Origin: Orbicella franksi
Taxonomy: Eukaryota
Direction of reading: 5' to 3'
DNA: 64,000 bases
Assembly: GCA_964199315.1 (NCBI GenBank)
Contig: OZ116702.1
Coordinates: 1,240,001 to 1,304,000 of the forward strand
Position 1 is the first letter of the stretch, and each line of letters begins with the position of its first letter. A program made the position numbers and the translations under genes. Positions 50,378-61,919 of the stretch are shown piece by piece. The notes below the pieces were generated by a model. That model had not been told where the DNA came from, ran no database searches, and saw nothing but the letters and a program-made list of their open reading frames with translations.

Positions 50378-52351
50378 TTATTCTTTGTAATGTTCCAGGG
50401 TTCTTGCGGAAGGATCAGTGGCATTAGTCCACTTTGGCATCCACACATATGGAATAAAATGGCTCTGACCAGGAAACAATTCTTCAAAAATCTGGCGGTA
50501 GTAAAAGCCTTCCTTGGTCTTAGGAGTGTTGTACGGGTACAGTTCAGCAGCACCAGCCAAGGCCTCATCAGGAACCTGGTTTTTGATGTGATTCTGTAAC
50601 AGCTCATACCATGACTGCCCAGGCTTGGTAGATGACACTCCATCAGAGAACGCCTCCTTAGCACGCCACAAAATCTCTTTGGGTAAGGCATCAGTGTTAT
50701 CAAAAGAGGCTCGAAGAAGCCACTTCTCAATGCCATCCTTAGGTTGGCGGATCTCTGGATTAAGGGACAGGAAATAAGATGTGAAATGAACATCCAGGAA
50801 AGGTACTCGGATTTCTAGACCATGTGCAGCAGTTGACCGGTCACCTCGCAGAACATCATAAAGGTAAAGATCTTCCAGCAGTCTTCGGGACTCTAGGTCA
50901 GCTTCCTCTGGGCTTGGAGCTTTGTGGAAATAGATGTAACCTTGACACAGCTCATCAGAACCTTCACCAGAGTAAATAACCACTGTGTCAGTTTCTTTAC
51001 TTATGTACTTGCTCACCAGATACATTCCCACAGAAGCACGGATTGTTGTTATGTCCCAAGTCTCCAGGGCATAAATGACATCGCGCAATGCTTGGATTCC
51101 TTCTTCAGCTGTGAAGATGACCTCGTGATGTTCACTACCTGAAAGAAAAGACAAATTCACAAACTTGACCCAATGGCTTCTTGCTGTTAACCAACAATCC
51201 AATGTTAAATAATTCCTAAAAAAAATAATTCTTGAGCACTCACAGGGTAAATACAGAAGATTTCTTGCAAAGGAGATCCCTCTAGAGAAGCCATCTACCA
51301 TGCACACTGCAGGTGAAACCCTTTTTACTAAATATACCCCCAACCTTAACCTTAAGACCCTTCCCCAATCATTCTTATTCCTTTGAGCACTTCTGTATCC
51401 ACTTTTCTCAGAGATCCACTTTTCAAGACTCAACTTACCAATATGTTTGGCCACTATCCGTGCTGCTGCAACATCTGTACTTCCTTCCATTCCAATTGAG
51501 AATGTTTGGATTGGGTAGTCAATCCCACTTTCCTTTGCCAGCTTGGTCAGATAAGAAGCCACTAAACTGGAATCCAGGCCTCCTGAGAGCAGACAGCCAA
51601 TTCTACGGTCAGCCATGAGGCGTTTACGCACTGCCTCAGAAAACAGCTTTCTGATATTTTCCATGACATCGCTGGAGTCTGGCTTTACACCGGTTTCAAA
51701 CACTGGTGGCTTGCCTATCTTTGTGTAGGCTTTTTGCTCAATAAACGTAGTTTGTCCATCGGGGGACAAGCTATATGATGCATACTGACCTGGAAAAAAT
51801 GGCTTCACAACAATTTTACTGCCATTTTTTTCAAACTGCTTGATCAGAGGGACAAGAGCTTTCGCTTCAGAGCTCAGAGCCAAAATTCCTGTTTCCTTGC
51901 CAGCCACAGACAATGTAAACAATGGACGGATCCCAAAAGTGTCTCTTCCAATGTGTACTTCTTTGTTCTTAGTGTCAATGATACAGAATGCAAAAACACC
52001 ATCCAGCATTTGCGCCATTTTCTCTGCTCCAAACTTGTCATAAAGATGTAGAATGACTTCTCCATCACATTTTGTGAAAAAGTCAAAGTCGTACTGCTTT
52101 CCAACTGCTTTGTGGTTGTATATTTCCCCGTTGTAAATAAGGTAGAGGTGTGGTAGTGCTTTAATCCTCATTGGCTGCATTCCATAGAGATCATCAACAA
52201 TGGCAAGCCGGTGAAATGCCACACAGCAGTTCTGGAAGTGAGGAATGGTCTCCATACGGAAGACATCAGGTCCTCTTTGGCAGATTTTCATGGCACAGCT
52301 GGCATACTTTGAGTACTCTGGGATACCAAATATAGCCCAGATACCACACAT
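50378..52351 (-). CDS. ASNS: Asparagine synthetase (glutamine-hydrolysing); exons 51439-52351 and 50378-51138; about 557 aa
   Basis: N-terminal Ntn nucleophile MCGIWA, RGPD, NGEIYNH, PP-loop [32 protein letters not shown] and C-terminal DPSARTL. The non-homologous 100-aa stretch in the 657-aa ORF is bounded by G|gtaagt (51438) and ctttcag|GT (51139), so it is an intron. A 5'UTR acceptor (atttcag) lies at 52377-52378. Confidence 0.96.
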
Positions 52352-58367: not shown

Positions 58368-61300
58368 ATGGAGGCTTATGCTGCAGAATTTGTTTCTGAA
58401 AGCTGCCCTGCTTTTAAGGATGGCTGTCCCTATTCCAAGCTTACTGAAGATCTTTTCATAGAAGAAATCAAGAAATGCCCTGAGTTCAAACAAGGCTGTC
58501 CATTCAAGAGTACAGGCAGTGTGACTGAAATCCTGGAAGAACTATCCAAGATGCCAGAGTCAAAGCACCACACAGGTGTAGCACATGAGCAGCTACTGAA
58601 CATGCTAAGAGTTGTTCACTCTGAGTCTAAAAGCTTGGAAGAGAAAGTTGGAGAGTGTCCTGTGTTCAAGACAAAGGAAGGATGTCCTTTTAAAGATGCC
58701 AGCAAGGAAGGAAAGCCTTTGATAGAGCCACCCACTGCCGTTCTTGAGAGTCTGACAGCATTGGATGTCAGTGGGCTTAAGGAGAAGTGTCCTGCATTTA
58801 AAGAAGGATGTCCATTTGCCAAGATGGATAATGAAGCCCTTCTGAAAGAAATCAAGAAATGCCCTGAGTTTAAGGACGGATGTGCTTTCAAGGATGCCAA
58901 AACAATAGAAGAAATCTACAGTAAGTTGTCGCAGATGCCGAATAGTGACAAAGATTGTCACCATAAAGATGCTCTCATGAAGACCATGAAAGTCATACAC
59001 AGTGTTGGCCATGAGAAAGCTGACAAGTGCCCAGTGCTTCAGAAAGAAGGCTGTCCTTTCAAGTTTGTTGAGAGTGAAGGGAAGCCACTTGTCAATCCAG
59101 CAGAAACTGTACTTCATGCAGTAGAAGAAAACAAATCAGAGTCTGAAAAACCTGTTGTTCACCTTGTGCCCCTCACAGATTTAAGAGAGACCTGTCCTGC
59201 ATTTGAATCTGGATGTCCGTTTGTGAAAGTTGGGGAGAGAGACTTTGGAAAAGAGCTGGAACTGTGTCCTGAGTTTAGAGAAGGTTGTCCTTATAAGGAC
59301 AGTGAAGTTGTAGGAGATATCTATAAGAAGCTTGTCAGTTTACCTTCTTTCTCCACTGAGGGATCCCATGGTGCAAAACTTTTGGACATTTTTAAGCACA
59401 TCCATGAAGTGTCCCATTCTTTGAGAGAGGAGATGGGTGAATGTCCAGTGTTTGTGACAGATGAGGGATGCCCATTCAAGACAGTCTGCAGTGATGGCAA
59501 GCCACTGATTGAAGTGCTGGATGGTCATCGCTGGACAAAGATTCTGGAGAGCTCTGTTGATGATGTCATAGAAAATGTGAGTCAAGAGATTGAGAAAACA
59601 GAACCACCAATTCACCTCTCTAAACAGCTTAAGAAAGGTACCAAGAAAGTTCACAGAGAAGCAGAAAATGTTCATTTTGTGAAGGAGTTTGCCAAAGGAA
59701 GAATTCAAAGACAGTGGTACAAAGAACTTCTTGCTGATCTCTACTTTGTCTACAGGTAAGATGAAGTCCATTGATATAGTTTTTATTGTGGGGTTGTGTT
59801 TGTTTTTTAAAGAAATAATGAAGGAGTACATGTAAAATTTACTTGTACTTCTTCATTATTTCTTTAAATACTATTTAATAGTATGTAATGTATGATACAC
59901 GTAAACACAACAATTATCCTTGCTAAATTTAGACCCACAGATTTTCTATATTTTATGAAACTTTTTGCGAATTTTGAACTTTGTGAAATTAAAAAGCCAA
60001 TGGGGGCCAACCAAGGCAGTGCTTTAAGGTCATAAGGTGATTATTTTCCATTCTCTCATCACCTGTTTCTGGACATTTTGTTGATAATGTAAGGAGATTT
60101 CAAGTGCACATCAGTCCTGAGAATGCACACAAACTAGGATTTAAAAATTCCTTTGACTGTTCTGAATCTAATTTACTTCACATTCGGAGCCAGCTATGCA
60201 GGGCTTTATTACATAGCTGTGCAGTCATATAAGTCTGTTATTTTTAGGGTTACATTTGCTTGGGAAAACCACCATTTCTCATAACATATATTTGAGCAGT
60301 TCTAGAAAATATCCACCCCTCCCCCCACAGAAAAGATTGGCATTTCCTGAGGTTGGGGGTTCGATGAGACCAAAGCATTTAAAGAAATGTGTGAAGCTTA
60401 ATTGGAATTTCCAGAAGGGTTGTTGGGTATTAGAAAAAGTCTCATCCATAGGGGAGGTATATGGATATTTTCTGGAACTATTGCTTAACTTTCCAAATGT
60501 TGAGATTTTGTTTACTTGTAACATAGCAGAAGCTCATGAAGTGTCTTGGTATCGCTTGTTAGAGCAGTTTTCAATTAAGCGCCCCAAAACCTGCAAACCG
60601 AAGTGCTAGCCTGCGTAGCAGGCATATAAAGGGGAGGGGGTAGGGGAGGAGGAAGGGAATTCGCGAAAAGAAAAAAAAAACAGAGGAGTGGGAGAGGAGA
60701 GGGGAAAAGGAACCGAATTCTCTTCCTCCTCCCTCACCTCCTCCCCTTTATACGCCTGCTATGCAGGCTACTAAAGTACCAGTACATGTAATCATTCTGA
60801 CCTGTTACAAAGGATGCAGACTATACAGTGACCAGATCAAAACTAACAGTTATTACACGTAACTGACACAATGCGTGGGAAAACATGTGCTAATGAGTTA
60901 CAATTGGTTGTGGTTTTCTTATGGATGGAAAAGTGGCATGCAGTTGATGCATAACCAATTACTCAAATGAAAACTGCTCTACTTGTGTGCAGACAATTTT
61001 AACTTGGTGGCAGCCAGTCAGAGATAACTGGGCATTGATATCTGTGCCATTATATTGGTGAGTAATACCAGACCTCTGGTATCCCAAGGGATTCGAAAGA
61101 AGCATTCATTGAGAGACATCTGTTCAGGCTAATTATGTTAGAGTGTTTATGGTGCCCATCCTGATCATTTACATGTATCTTTCTTCCCTCAGGGCTCTTG
61201 AGGAAGAGAGTGAGAAACACAAGGAACATGAATTGTTCAAGGTGGTGCATTTTCCAAAAGAGCTTGGGCGTCTGCAGTGTTTGGAGGAAGATATGGAGTT

Positions 61301-61919
61301 CTATTTTGGAGAGGAATGGAAAGACAGAGTTCCCATGTCTGATGCTACAAAAGCCTACGTTGACAGAATCCATGAAGTTGCTGGCAAAGATCCTGCTCTG
61401 CTGATAGCTCATCACTACACCAGGTACCTGGGCGATTTGTCTGGAGGACAAATCCTGCGCAAAATGGCAATGAAAGCAATGGATCTTCCAAGCACAGGTG
61501 AAGGGGTACAGTTTTATGTCTTTGAAAACATCTCTGACGCAAAGAAGTTCAAGAACATGTATCGATCACGCCTTGATGAACTGAACATCGATAAAGACAA
61601 ATCAGATGAGATTGTTAAAGAAGCAAATTATGTTTTCATGCTGAACATATACTTATTTCAAGAGATAGATGCCTTGGCTGGATTTGTGGACGAGGAACCA
61701 AAGAAGAAAAAGCTGACTGTTGAAGAGATTTACAGCAATGTCGACACCAGTAAAGAATCTGCTGGGGTGTGTCCTTTTGCCACTATGGCTAAGAAGCCTG
61801 CACAAGTAAACACAGCAACTCCAAGTGGTGAAGTAAGAAGCATCAGTCCAGTGCTTTTGGCCATAATTATTGCAGTTGCAGCTATTGTGATAGGGCTGCT
61901 TTTTACCAAAATGAGGTAA
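58368..61919 (+). CDS. HMOX: Heme oxygenase with an N-terminal triple Cys-Pro repeat extension and a C-terminal TM anchor (exons 58368-59755 and 61193-61919; about 704 aa)
   Basis: HO domain: LSKQLKKGTKKVHREAEN (proximal His), LYFVY|RALEEE, FP-KELGRL, AHHYTRYLGDLSGGQIL (HO signature with the distal Asp), F..MYRSRLD; HO-2-like CPF motif (AGVCPFA) and hydrophobic tail VLLAIIIAVAAIVIGLLF. Donor AG|gtaag at 59755, acceptor ccctcag|G at 61193; 2115 nt, in frame. The ATG has a catcATGG context just after a 5'UTR acceptor (catttag). Confidence 0.95.
60560..60981. mobile_element. Nested MITEs in the HMOX intron: outer TAGAGCAGTTTTCA-TIR element containing inner TA|GCCTGCGTAGCAGGC element (60607-60770)
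   Basis: TAGAGCAGTTTTCA at 60560 and TGAAAACTGCTCTA ending at 60981; inner TIRs GCCTGCGTAGCAGGC.TATAAAGGGGAGG and CCTCCCCTTTATACGCCTGCTATGCAGGC, each flanked by TA. Confidence 0.75.

Follow-up and report, generated by a model that had tools for sequence, protein, structure and literature searches.

A coral heme oxygenase preceded by three copies of a conserved Cys-Pro-rich unit, with a putative role in heme capture

A 64,000-nucleotide stretch of DNA from the coral Orbicella franksi (contig OZ116702.1 of assembly GCA_964199315.1, positions 1,240,001 to 1,304,000 of the forward strand; here called the window) carries on its + strand, between positions 58368 and 61919, a gene for a 704-amino-acid (aa) protein in which a tail-anchored heme oxygenase (HO) resembling vertebrate HO-2 is preceded by three tandem units of about 125 aa, each rich in Cys-Pro. 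The dipeptides resemble the heme-regulatory motifs (HRMs, or CP motifs) of known heme-binding regulators, and on balance we favour the reading that the three N-terminal units constitute a multivalent HRM-type module for the capture or sensing of heme, displayed on the cytosolic face of the endoplasmic reticulum (ER).

The HRM reading is adopted because of the context of the motifs (Cys-Pro followed one or two positions on by an aromatic residue, with frequent Lys, and with conserved His on the preceding helix), the loose spacing within the pairs that they form, the near-exclusive link of the unit with HO, and its repeated amplification. We infer heme as the ligand, and likewise the hand-over and redox gating considered here. 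In the proposed mechanism the Cys-Pro thiolates, some of them paired with a conserved His, would reversibly ligate ferric heme in the manner of the two HRMs of HO-2. Placed next to the catalytic pocket, the units would then form a multivalent antenna or sensor for heme, which could concentrate labile heme and hand it to the active site. They might also let heme load and thiol redox state control activity, docking of the reductase or turnover; each C-x6-9-C pair could form a disulfide, which would provide for redox gating.

The Cys-Pro-rich unit

Proline follows 18 of the 22 cysteines of the protein, 17 in the N-terminal region and one (C656-P657) towards the C-terminus. The initial annotation, made without database searches, had counted 17 Cys-Pro and one Cys-Ala in three units beginning at C13, C141 and C276, and this count was reproduced on translation, as were all the other coordinates and counts given there. 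The cysteines form nine C-x6-8-C pairs, whose first members are C13, C37, C97, C141, C165, C221, C276, C300 and C359. Unit 1 (aa 9-125; 58392..58742, +) houses the pairs C13/C20, C37/C44 and C97/C106, with histidines at positions 67/68, 73 and 84; unit 2 (aa 137-250; 58776..59117, +) houses C141/C148, C165/C172 and C221/C229, C172 being the cysteine of the Cys-Ala; and unit 3 (aa 272-395; 59181..59552, +), which adjoins the HO domain, houses C276/C283, C300/C307 and C359/C368 and includes the connector GKPLIEVLDGHRW, which is kept in HOs with one unit. The Cys-Ala change in unit 2 is common to Actinostola, Desmophyllum and a Stylophora paralog. Over aa 1-385 proline follows 17 of the 20 cysteines (binomial p ~4e-17 at the local proline frequency), and the contexts are CPxF or CPF/Y, so that the hydrophobic residue by which a heme-regulatory (CP) motif is recognised is present. 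The three units are mutually 46-50% identical, and Tandem Repeats Finder detected no DNA-level tandem repeat at the locus; since no repeat remains in the DNA, the triplication is old.

When 31 single units, drawn from corals through to protists, were aligned, 18 positions proved invariant, among them all six Cys, three of the Pro residues that follow them, Phe residues, one His, a CPFK motif, and the Gly and Leu of G.PL; a second His hardly varies. The layout is that of three CPxFxxGCPF pairs together with a helical segment bearing the conserved His, and the spacing within pairs ranges from 6 to 10 residues, while the linker between pairs A and B is widely variable in length. The description of the region as an array of motifs is therefore right as to the reality of the Cys-Pro repeats but not as to their looseness: on this alignment the repeat is a conserved domain of about 125 aa, and a loose string of motifs is excluded.

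No known relative of this domain came to light. Pfam searches with both exons and ten relatives gave no family for the unit, only Cys-driven noise that was either sub-threshold or confined to no passing stretch. Thus the ALAS presequence family (PF09029), with 11.1 bits and E 0.55, fell short of its gathering score of 21; Fer4_11 reached 17-23 bits against 26 in relatives; and zf-TRAF_2 (30.2 against 27, in protein P0022) and zf-CCCH_DUS3L (36.9 against 30, in P0071) exceeded their whole-protein cut-offs with no single stretch passing. For the window protein itself Pfam gave no zinc-finger or Fe-S family match, and ligand spacing of the CxxC type is absent. A profile search of the PDB sequences with the unit returned as its best match a chaperonin subunit at E 0.08, as expected by chance. 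In a feature search of the ESM Atlas, scores were no higher than 0.54, which makes the result a lead only; its top clusters hint weakly at the ALAS presequence. The HRM-bearing ALAS presequence is thereby the source of the sole known-family hints for the unit, weak in both Pfam and the ESM Atlas.

Structure prediction, which the initial annotation had proposed, yielded a helical domain of moderate confidence. AlphaFold modelled unit 3 alone at a pLDDT of 61, and a unit within a full-length one-unit HO (in a model drawing on 71 sequences) at 63-81, with defined helices and a predicted beta hairpin after pair C. Foldseek searches of the PDB and the AlphaFold database (AFDB) clusters with the unit 3 model found no fold relative, the sole match being the Stylophora ortholog in AFDB. 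Membership of an already characterised family, raised at the outset as a possible objection, thus finds no match to the unit in Pfam, PDB or fold searches.

The six Cys and two His of each unit offer eight conserved potential ligands, and the unit might instead be a structural or redox-active metal domain, housing two zinc sites or an Fe-S cluster and providing HO with a reductase docking platform or a built-in electron relay. The partly ordered helical model with its hairpin would suit such a domain, as would the faint sub-threshold matches of relatives to Fer4_11, zf-TRAF_2 and a CCCH finger; HO requires an electron donor, and the HRM region of HO-2 lies near the FMN domain of the reductase (PMC11900463). 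Against this, there is no credible match to a metal-binding family, zf-TRAF_2 and zf-CCCH_DUS3L lacking a stretch that passes by itself, and no fold match in PDB or AFDB. CxxC knuckles are absent, and the drift of 6-10 residues in pair spacing and the widely varying A-B linker are, as judged from the aligned units, unlike rigid metal knuckles. Proline after essentially every Cys is a hallmark of HRMs and has no rationale in zinc or Fe-S sites, and HO-less proteins built from repeated pairs alone have no His helices. We consider a metal domain unlikely, although it merits serious attention.

Gene structure and the heme oxygenase

The gene comprises two exons on the + strand. Exon 1 (58368..59755) is an uninterrupted frame of 462 codons plus 2 nt, and encodes the start codon, the three Cys-Pro-rich units, a linker and the first HO helix including the proximal His429. 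It is followed by an intron of 1437 nt (59756..61192, GT...AG, phase 2), with its GT donor at 59756 and its AG acceptor at 61191-61192 preceded by a pyrimidine-rich tract. Exon 2 (61193..61919), read from 61194, carries the HO domain on and then encodes an acidic/basic linker, the C-terminal HRM, the tail anchor and a stop codon (61917-61919), giving the spliced product of 704 aa. The HO family PF01126 runs unbroken over the junction, with profile positions 2-48 in exon 1 (aa 416-462) and 50-204 in exon 2. The splice proposed in the initial annotation (58368-59755/61193-61919) was borne out by these donor and acceptor sites, by the continuity of PF01126, and by a 2.3-kb contig (L001) built from the public reads of one run on a related coral. 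This contig is intron-less and agrees exactly with the predicted splice at its junction (..LYFVYR|ALEEESE..), and it contains in one frame a leader, a Met, the three units, HO, VCPFATM and the anchor, except for one in-frame stop. The stop falls within unit 2 (L001:2-628, ..KSVE*IYSRL..); it may reflect an error in sequencing or assembly, or else an allele or a variant that truncates the protein. The genome of a related coral (L003) has a two-ORF (open reading frame) layout like that of the window gene, and NCBI models with the same architecture exist for Actinostola (707 aa) and Desmophyllum (645 aa, N-terminally truncated).

It might be argued that the fusion is an artefact of the gene model, and that the HO actually produced is an ordinary one that lacks the repeats: the window model was read from genomic DNA, and the related transcript-like contig does bear its one stop inside unit 2. 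The repeats and the catalytic His lie, however, in one open exon that contains no in-frame Met between M356 and His429, and an active HO-only isoform could therefore arise neither by exon skipping nor by internal initiation. Such an isoform is ruled out by the exon structure. Further evidence against an artefact is provided by the intron-less contig, with its 5' leader and its units, HO and anchor in frame bar the one stop; by the full-length model in Actinostola and the further model in Desmophyllum; and by single-ORF transcripts for one-unit HOs in many protists. An artefact is hardly credible in the face of these observations. The gene is genuine, with units and HO in one message, as transcribed in the related coral.

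The catalytic features of the enzyme are intact. The N-terminal portion of the HO domain, with the proximal helix (59613..59755, +; the His429 codon lies within 59652-59669), scored 48.1 bits against PF01126 and the portion in exon 2 scored 190.1 bits (E 5e-56), where the cut-off is 23; against PDB sequences the best matches of exon 2 were HO-2 and HO-1 (E ~1e-52). The proximal His429 in KKVHREAEN and the distal-helix YTRYLGDLSGG at 538-548, both singled out in the initial annotation (as HREAEN and YTRYLGDLSGG), are present and align with HO-2 (PDB 2q32). The eighteenth Cys-Pro, placed by the same annotation between HO and the membrane anchor as VCPFA, is indeed there, in VCPFATM (aa 655-661; 61767..61787, +), and is homologous to the HO-2 HRM: when the C-terminal halves of the coral and anemone proteins, five vertebrate HO-2 and four protist HOs are aligned, C656 and P657 fall in invariant columns. 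Two of these four protist HOs bear two Cys-Pro-Tyr/Phe motifs, like HO-2. The hydrophobic tail anchor (aa 682-700; 61848..61904, +) aligns with the membrane segment of HO-2 and is followed by TKMR and the stop codon. The nearest named non-cnidarian matches of exon 2 are vertebrate HO-2 (E ~1e-54, 41-51% identity), and by these comparisons the enzyme is classed as an HO-2-like, tail-anchored heme oxygenase. In a tree of HO domains the cnidarian HOs fall outside the clade of vertebrate HO-1 and HO-2, with weak support (49/63), and the coral gene is probably the pro-ortholog of both HMOX1 and HMOX2.

Distribution and evolution

A search with aa 1-385, as suggested in the initial annotation, matched 156 proteins, and the fusion was found to span corals, anemones, jellyfish, an oomycete, Amoebozoa and dinoflagellates. 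HOs with three units occur in stony corals and sea anemones, and one with two units in the soft coral Xenia. Single-unit HOs are found in Aphanomyces (an oomycete), Balamuthia (an amoeba), Durusdinium and Gymnodinium (dinoflagellates), Sanderia (a jellyfish) and many transcriptome entries. HO-less paralogs are present in the cnidarians Stylophora, Desmophyllum, Actinia, Xenia and Dendronephthya, and proteins with nothing but units or pairs were met with in Physarum, Planoprotostelium, Spongospora and the choanoflagellate Salpingoeca. The HO-less arrays are soluble in slime moulds and corals, and tail-anchored in the choanoflagellate, where a Salpingoeca urceolata protein (P0041, EukProt) combines three units with a C-terminal Cys-Pro and a hydrophobic tail, lacks HO, and so amounts to the tail-anchored module alone. 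The architecture in general is thus not special to the Orbicella franksi protein, since one-unit versions precede HO elsewhere. The suggestion in the initial annotation that no HO of this architecture had been described holds for the literature, in which a full-text search whose cover lies outside subscription journals found no publication describing it; it does not hold for databases, where such proteins are already deposited under the labels 'heme oxygenase' or 'uncharacterized'.

When 1.84 billion cluster representatives were searched exhaustively with a profile of the unit, only 242 matched at E <= 0.001. Among the matches listed that were at least 250 aa long, 53 had HO and 17 did not, and most of the 17 are near-pure Cys-Pro, with for example 41 of 42, 24 of 24, 20 of 20 and 19 of 19 cysteines in that context; long multi-domain matches to the unit profile were again found to contain HO. 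The unit is linked near-exclusively with HO. So tight an association between a Cys/His-rich unit and an adjoining enzyme that releases iron might also be expected of a product acceptor or iron chaperone, which would capture Fe(II) from heme cleavage and pass it on. Neither Pfam nor PDB nor fold searches revealed any similarity to a known iron chaperone or Fe-binding family, however; tail-anchored and soluble arrays exist without HO, as in Salpingoeca and Physarum; and the Cys-Pro context would be left unexplained. We regard an iron-acceptor role as very improbable.

Several individual proteins depart from the usual arrangements. P0249 has half a unit with three tandem HO domains; P0189 combines ubiquitin, a partial unit and HO; P0201 combines a partial unit, HO and a ketoacyl synthase, possibly through a merged gene model; and P0202 has F-BAR and RhoGAP domains with half a unit at its C-terminus. 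In the one-unit HO of Sanderia malayensis (P0060), HREASS and GDLSGAQ replace HREAEN and GDLSGGQ and the C-terminal Cys-Pro is absent; with its catalytic region so divergent, the function of this protein may be altered.

In a tree of single units each unit of the window protein groups with its positional counterpart in Actinostola (unit 1 with 1, 99/97; unit 2 with 2, 100/99; unit 3 with 3, 98/97), and the triplication therefore predates the split between stony corals and sea anemones. The domain itself is much older than the triplication. The two-unit paralog of Stylophora nests within the unit 1 and unit 2 clades, and is therefore a partial copy of the HO gene. The same tree points to amplification of the unit independently in Hexacorallia, in Octocorallia (the stand-alone proteins), in the choanoflagellate Salpingoeca, and in coral and anemone paralogs (a divergent Desmophyllum paralog and an Actinia protein). 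Such repeated amplification suggests selection for capacity.

In the tree of HO domains the cnidarian HOs form one clade with moderate support (93/86), which also takes in the one-unit HOs P0059 and P0145, stands apart from the dinoflagellate (Durusdinium) clade, and joins the vertebrate HOs only at the weakly supported node already mentioned; oomycete, amoebozoan and dinoflagellate HOs each cluster by lineage. Transfer from a dinoflagellate symbiont was rejected on account of the separation between the cnidarian and Durusdinium clades. The simplest reading of these trees is that an old unit-HO-HRM-anchor architecture has been vertically inherited, expanded in Anthozoa, and lost its N-terminal unit towards the vertebrates.

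In the related coral whose two-ORF gene was mentioned above, a stand-alone two-unit paralog of 270 aa without HO (L002:10001-10813) is situated some 32 kb downstream of the HO fusion (L003:6001-8736), L002 and L003 being parts of one 743-kb contig. Units 1-2 of the HO gene are its source, and it shares the Cys-Ala change. No further copy of the unit was found inside the window by tblastn, and a counterpart of this paralog would fall past the window's end. Elsewhere in the window, a long ORF on the - strand (50378-52351) begins MCGIWAIFG... and may encode a glutamine-dependent asparagine synthetase; an odd in-frame segment in its middle may be a read-through intron.

Heme binding and comparison with known systems

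The analogy with HO-2 gives the heme-capture reading much of its content. The HRMs of HO-2 bind a second heme (with a shoulder near 365 nm) and form a redox-dependent disulfide, and activity in vitro is lower when they are heme-bound (PMC11900463); a role in supplying the catalytic site with heme has also been suggested for them (PMC8808069).

A number of considerations weigh against heme capture as the role of the units. The case for heme ligation is built on sequence comparison, and the count of six Cys and two His per unit is exactly that for two tetrahedral metal sites. To judge from the structural models, the unit may be a folded, cofactor-stabilised domain instead of a set of flexible HRMs. 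The N-terminal region is acidic, with a net charge of -18, and of the 9-mers around the 18 Cys-Pro nine are positive, five neutral and four negative, the negative ones mostly in unit 3; peptide studies found that positive local net charge at CP motifs favours heme (PMC6356037). In HEK293 cells the HRMs of HO-2 were dispensable for heme buffering (PMC8808069), so that being a true HRM need not imply a buffering role.

A further alternative requires no ligand at all. Every Cys is paired at short range, HO is a stress enzyme in corals, and the HRM cysteines of HO-2 form a redox-responsive disulfide (PMC11900463); oxidative stress might then close the C-x6-C pairs of a simple thiol/disulfide switch, tuning HO activity or degradation. 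Such a switch would leave unexplained the invariant Pro, the aromatic and Lys context and the conserved His, as well as the cytosolic stand-alone arrays of 20-40 Cys-Pro and the repeated amplification of the unit; moreover, it is compatible with heme binding and does not exclude it. A ligand-free switch seems to us improbable.

If the units do serve in heme capture, it is tempting to go further and suggest that the unit is an ancient eukaryotic 'poly-HRM' heme-capture domain of an ancestral ER-bound HO, of which the HRMs of vertebrate HO-2 would be the last remnant, and that the HO-less arrays are high-capacity buffers or carriers of cytosolic labile heme. This wider proposal is a tentative one, and we hold it to be possible rather than probable. 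To our knowledge no dedicated class of proteins is established for the buffering or carriage of labile heme in the cytosol, and the present proteins, in protists and cnidarians, would be candidates. The purpose of the HO-2 HRMs has been debated for decades from two motifs in one vertebrate protein. Cys-Pro motifs beside HO now prove to be ancient and widespread, mostly in the form of a conserved domain of six Cys-Pro that has been repeatedly multiplied; what is new is an HRM-bearing HO whose HRMs lie in a conserved, amplifiable domain with no prior description or Pfam entry, which defines a new family for annotation. Nature thus offers proteins in which the unit occurs once, twice or three times, as well as forms without HO, as material for tests of heme hand-over, buffering and redox gating. 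In corals, where HO already serves as a stress marker, oxidative stress and the turnover of heme are relevant to both symbiosis and bleaching.

Among characterised proteins, vertebrate HO-2 (HMOX2) is the closest counterpart, having the same catalytic core, a C-terminal tail anchor, and Cys-Pro-Phe/Tyr HRMs between core and anchor. HO-2 differs in that its N-terminus consists of some 28 unstructured residues, where the coral protein has about 395 extra residues forming three domains; and HO-2 has two C-terminal HRMs, whereas the coral protein has one, in addition to its 17 N-terminal Cys-Pro. The one-unit HOs of Aphanomyces euteiches, Balamuthia mandrillaris, Durusdinium trenchii, Gymnodinium smaydae and Sanderia malayensis, annotated solely as heme oxygenase or hypothetical, share with the coral protein the same invariant Cys, Pro, Phe, His and Lys residues, the order unit-HO-anchor and the connector ..G.PL..EL...W, and most of them have a Cys-Pro between HO and anchor. 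They bear a single unit, in contrast to the three position-orthologous units of the hexacoral HOs.

Clustered Cys-Pro motifs for reversible heme binding are found in yeast Hap1 (HRM1-7), in Bach1 and in the presequence of ALAS1/2 (for the concept of the CP motif, see PMC6356037). The coral protein resembles them in having several Cys-Pro clustered in one region, although there is no homology. The HRMs of these regulators lie in poorly conserved, disordered segments, whereas the Cys-Pro of the coral protein occupy fixed, paired positions in a conserved domain, attached to an enzyme that degrades heme.

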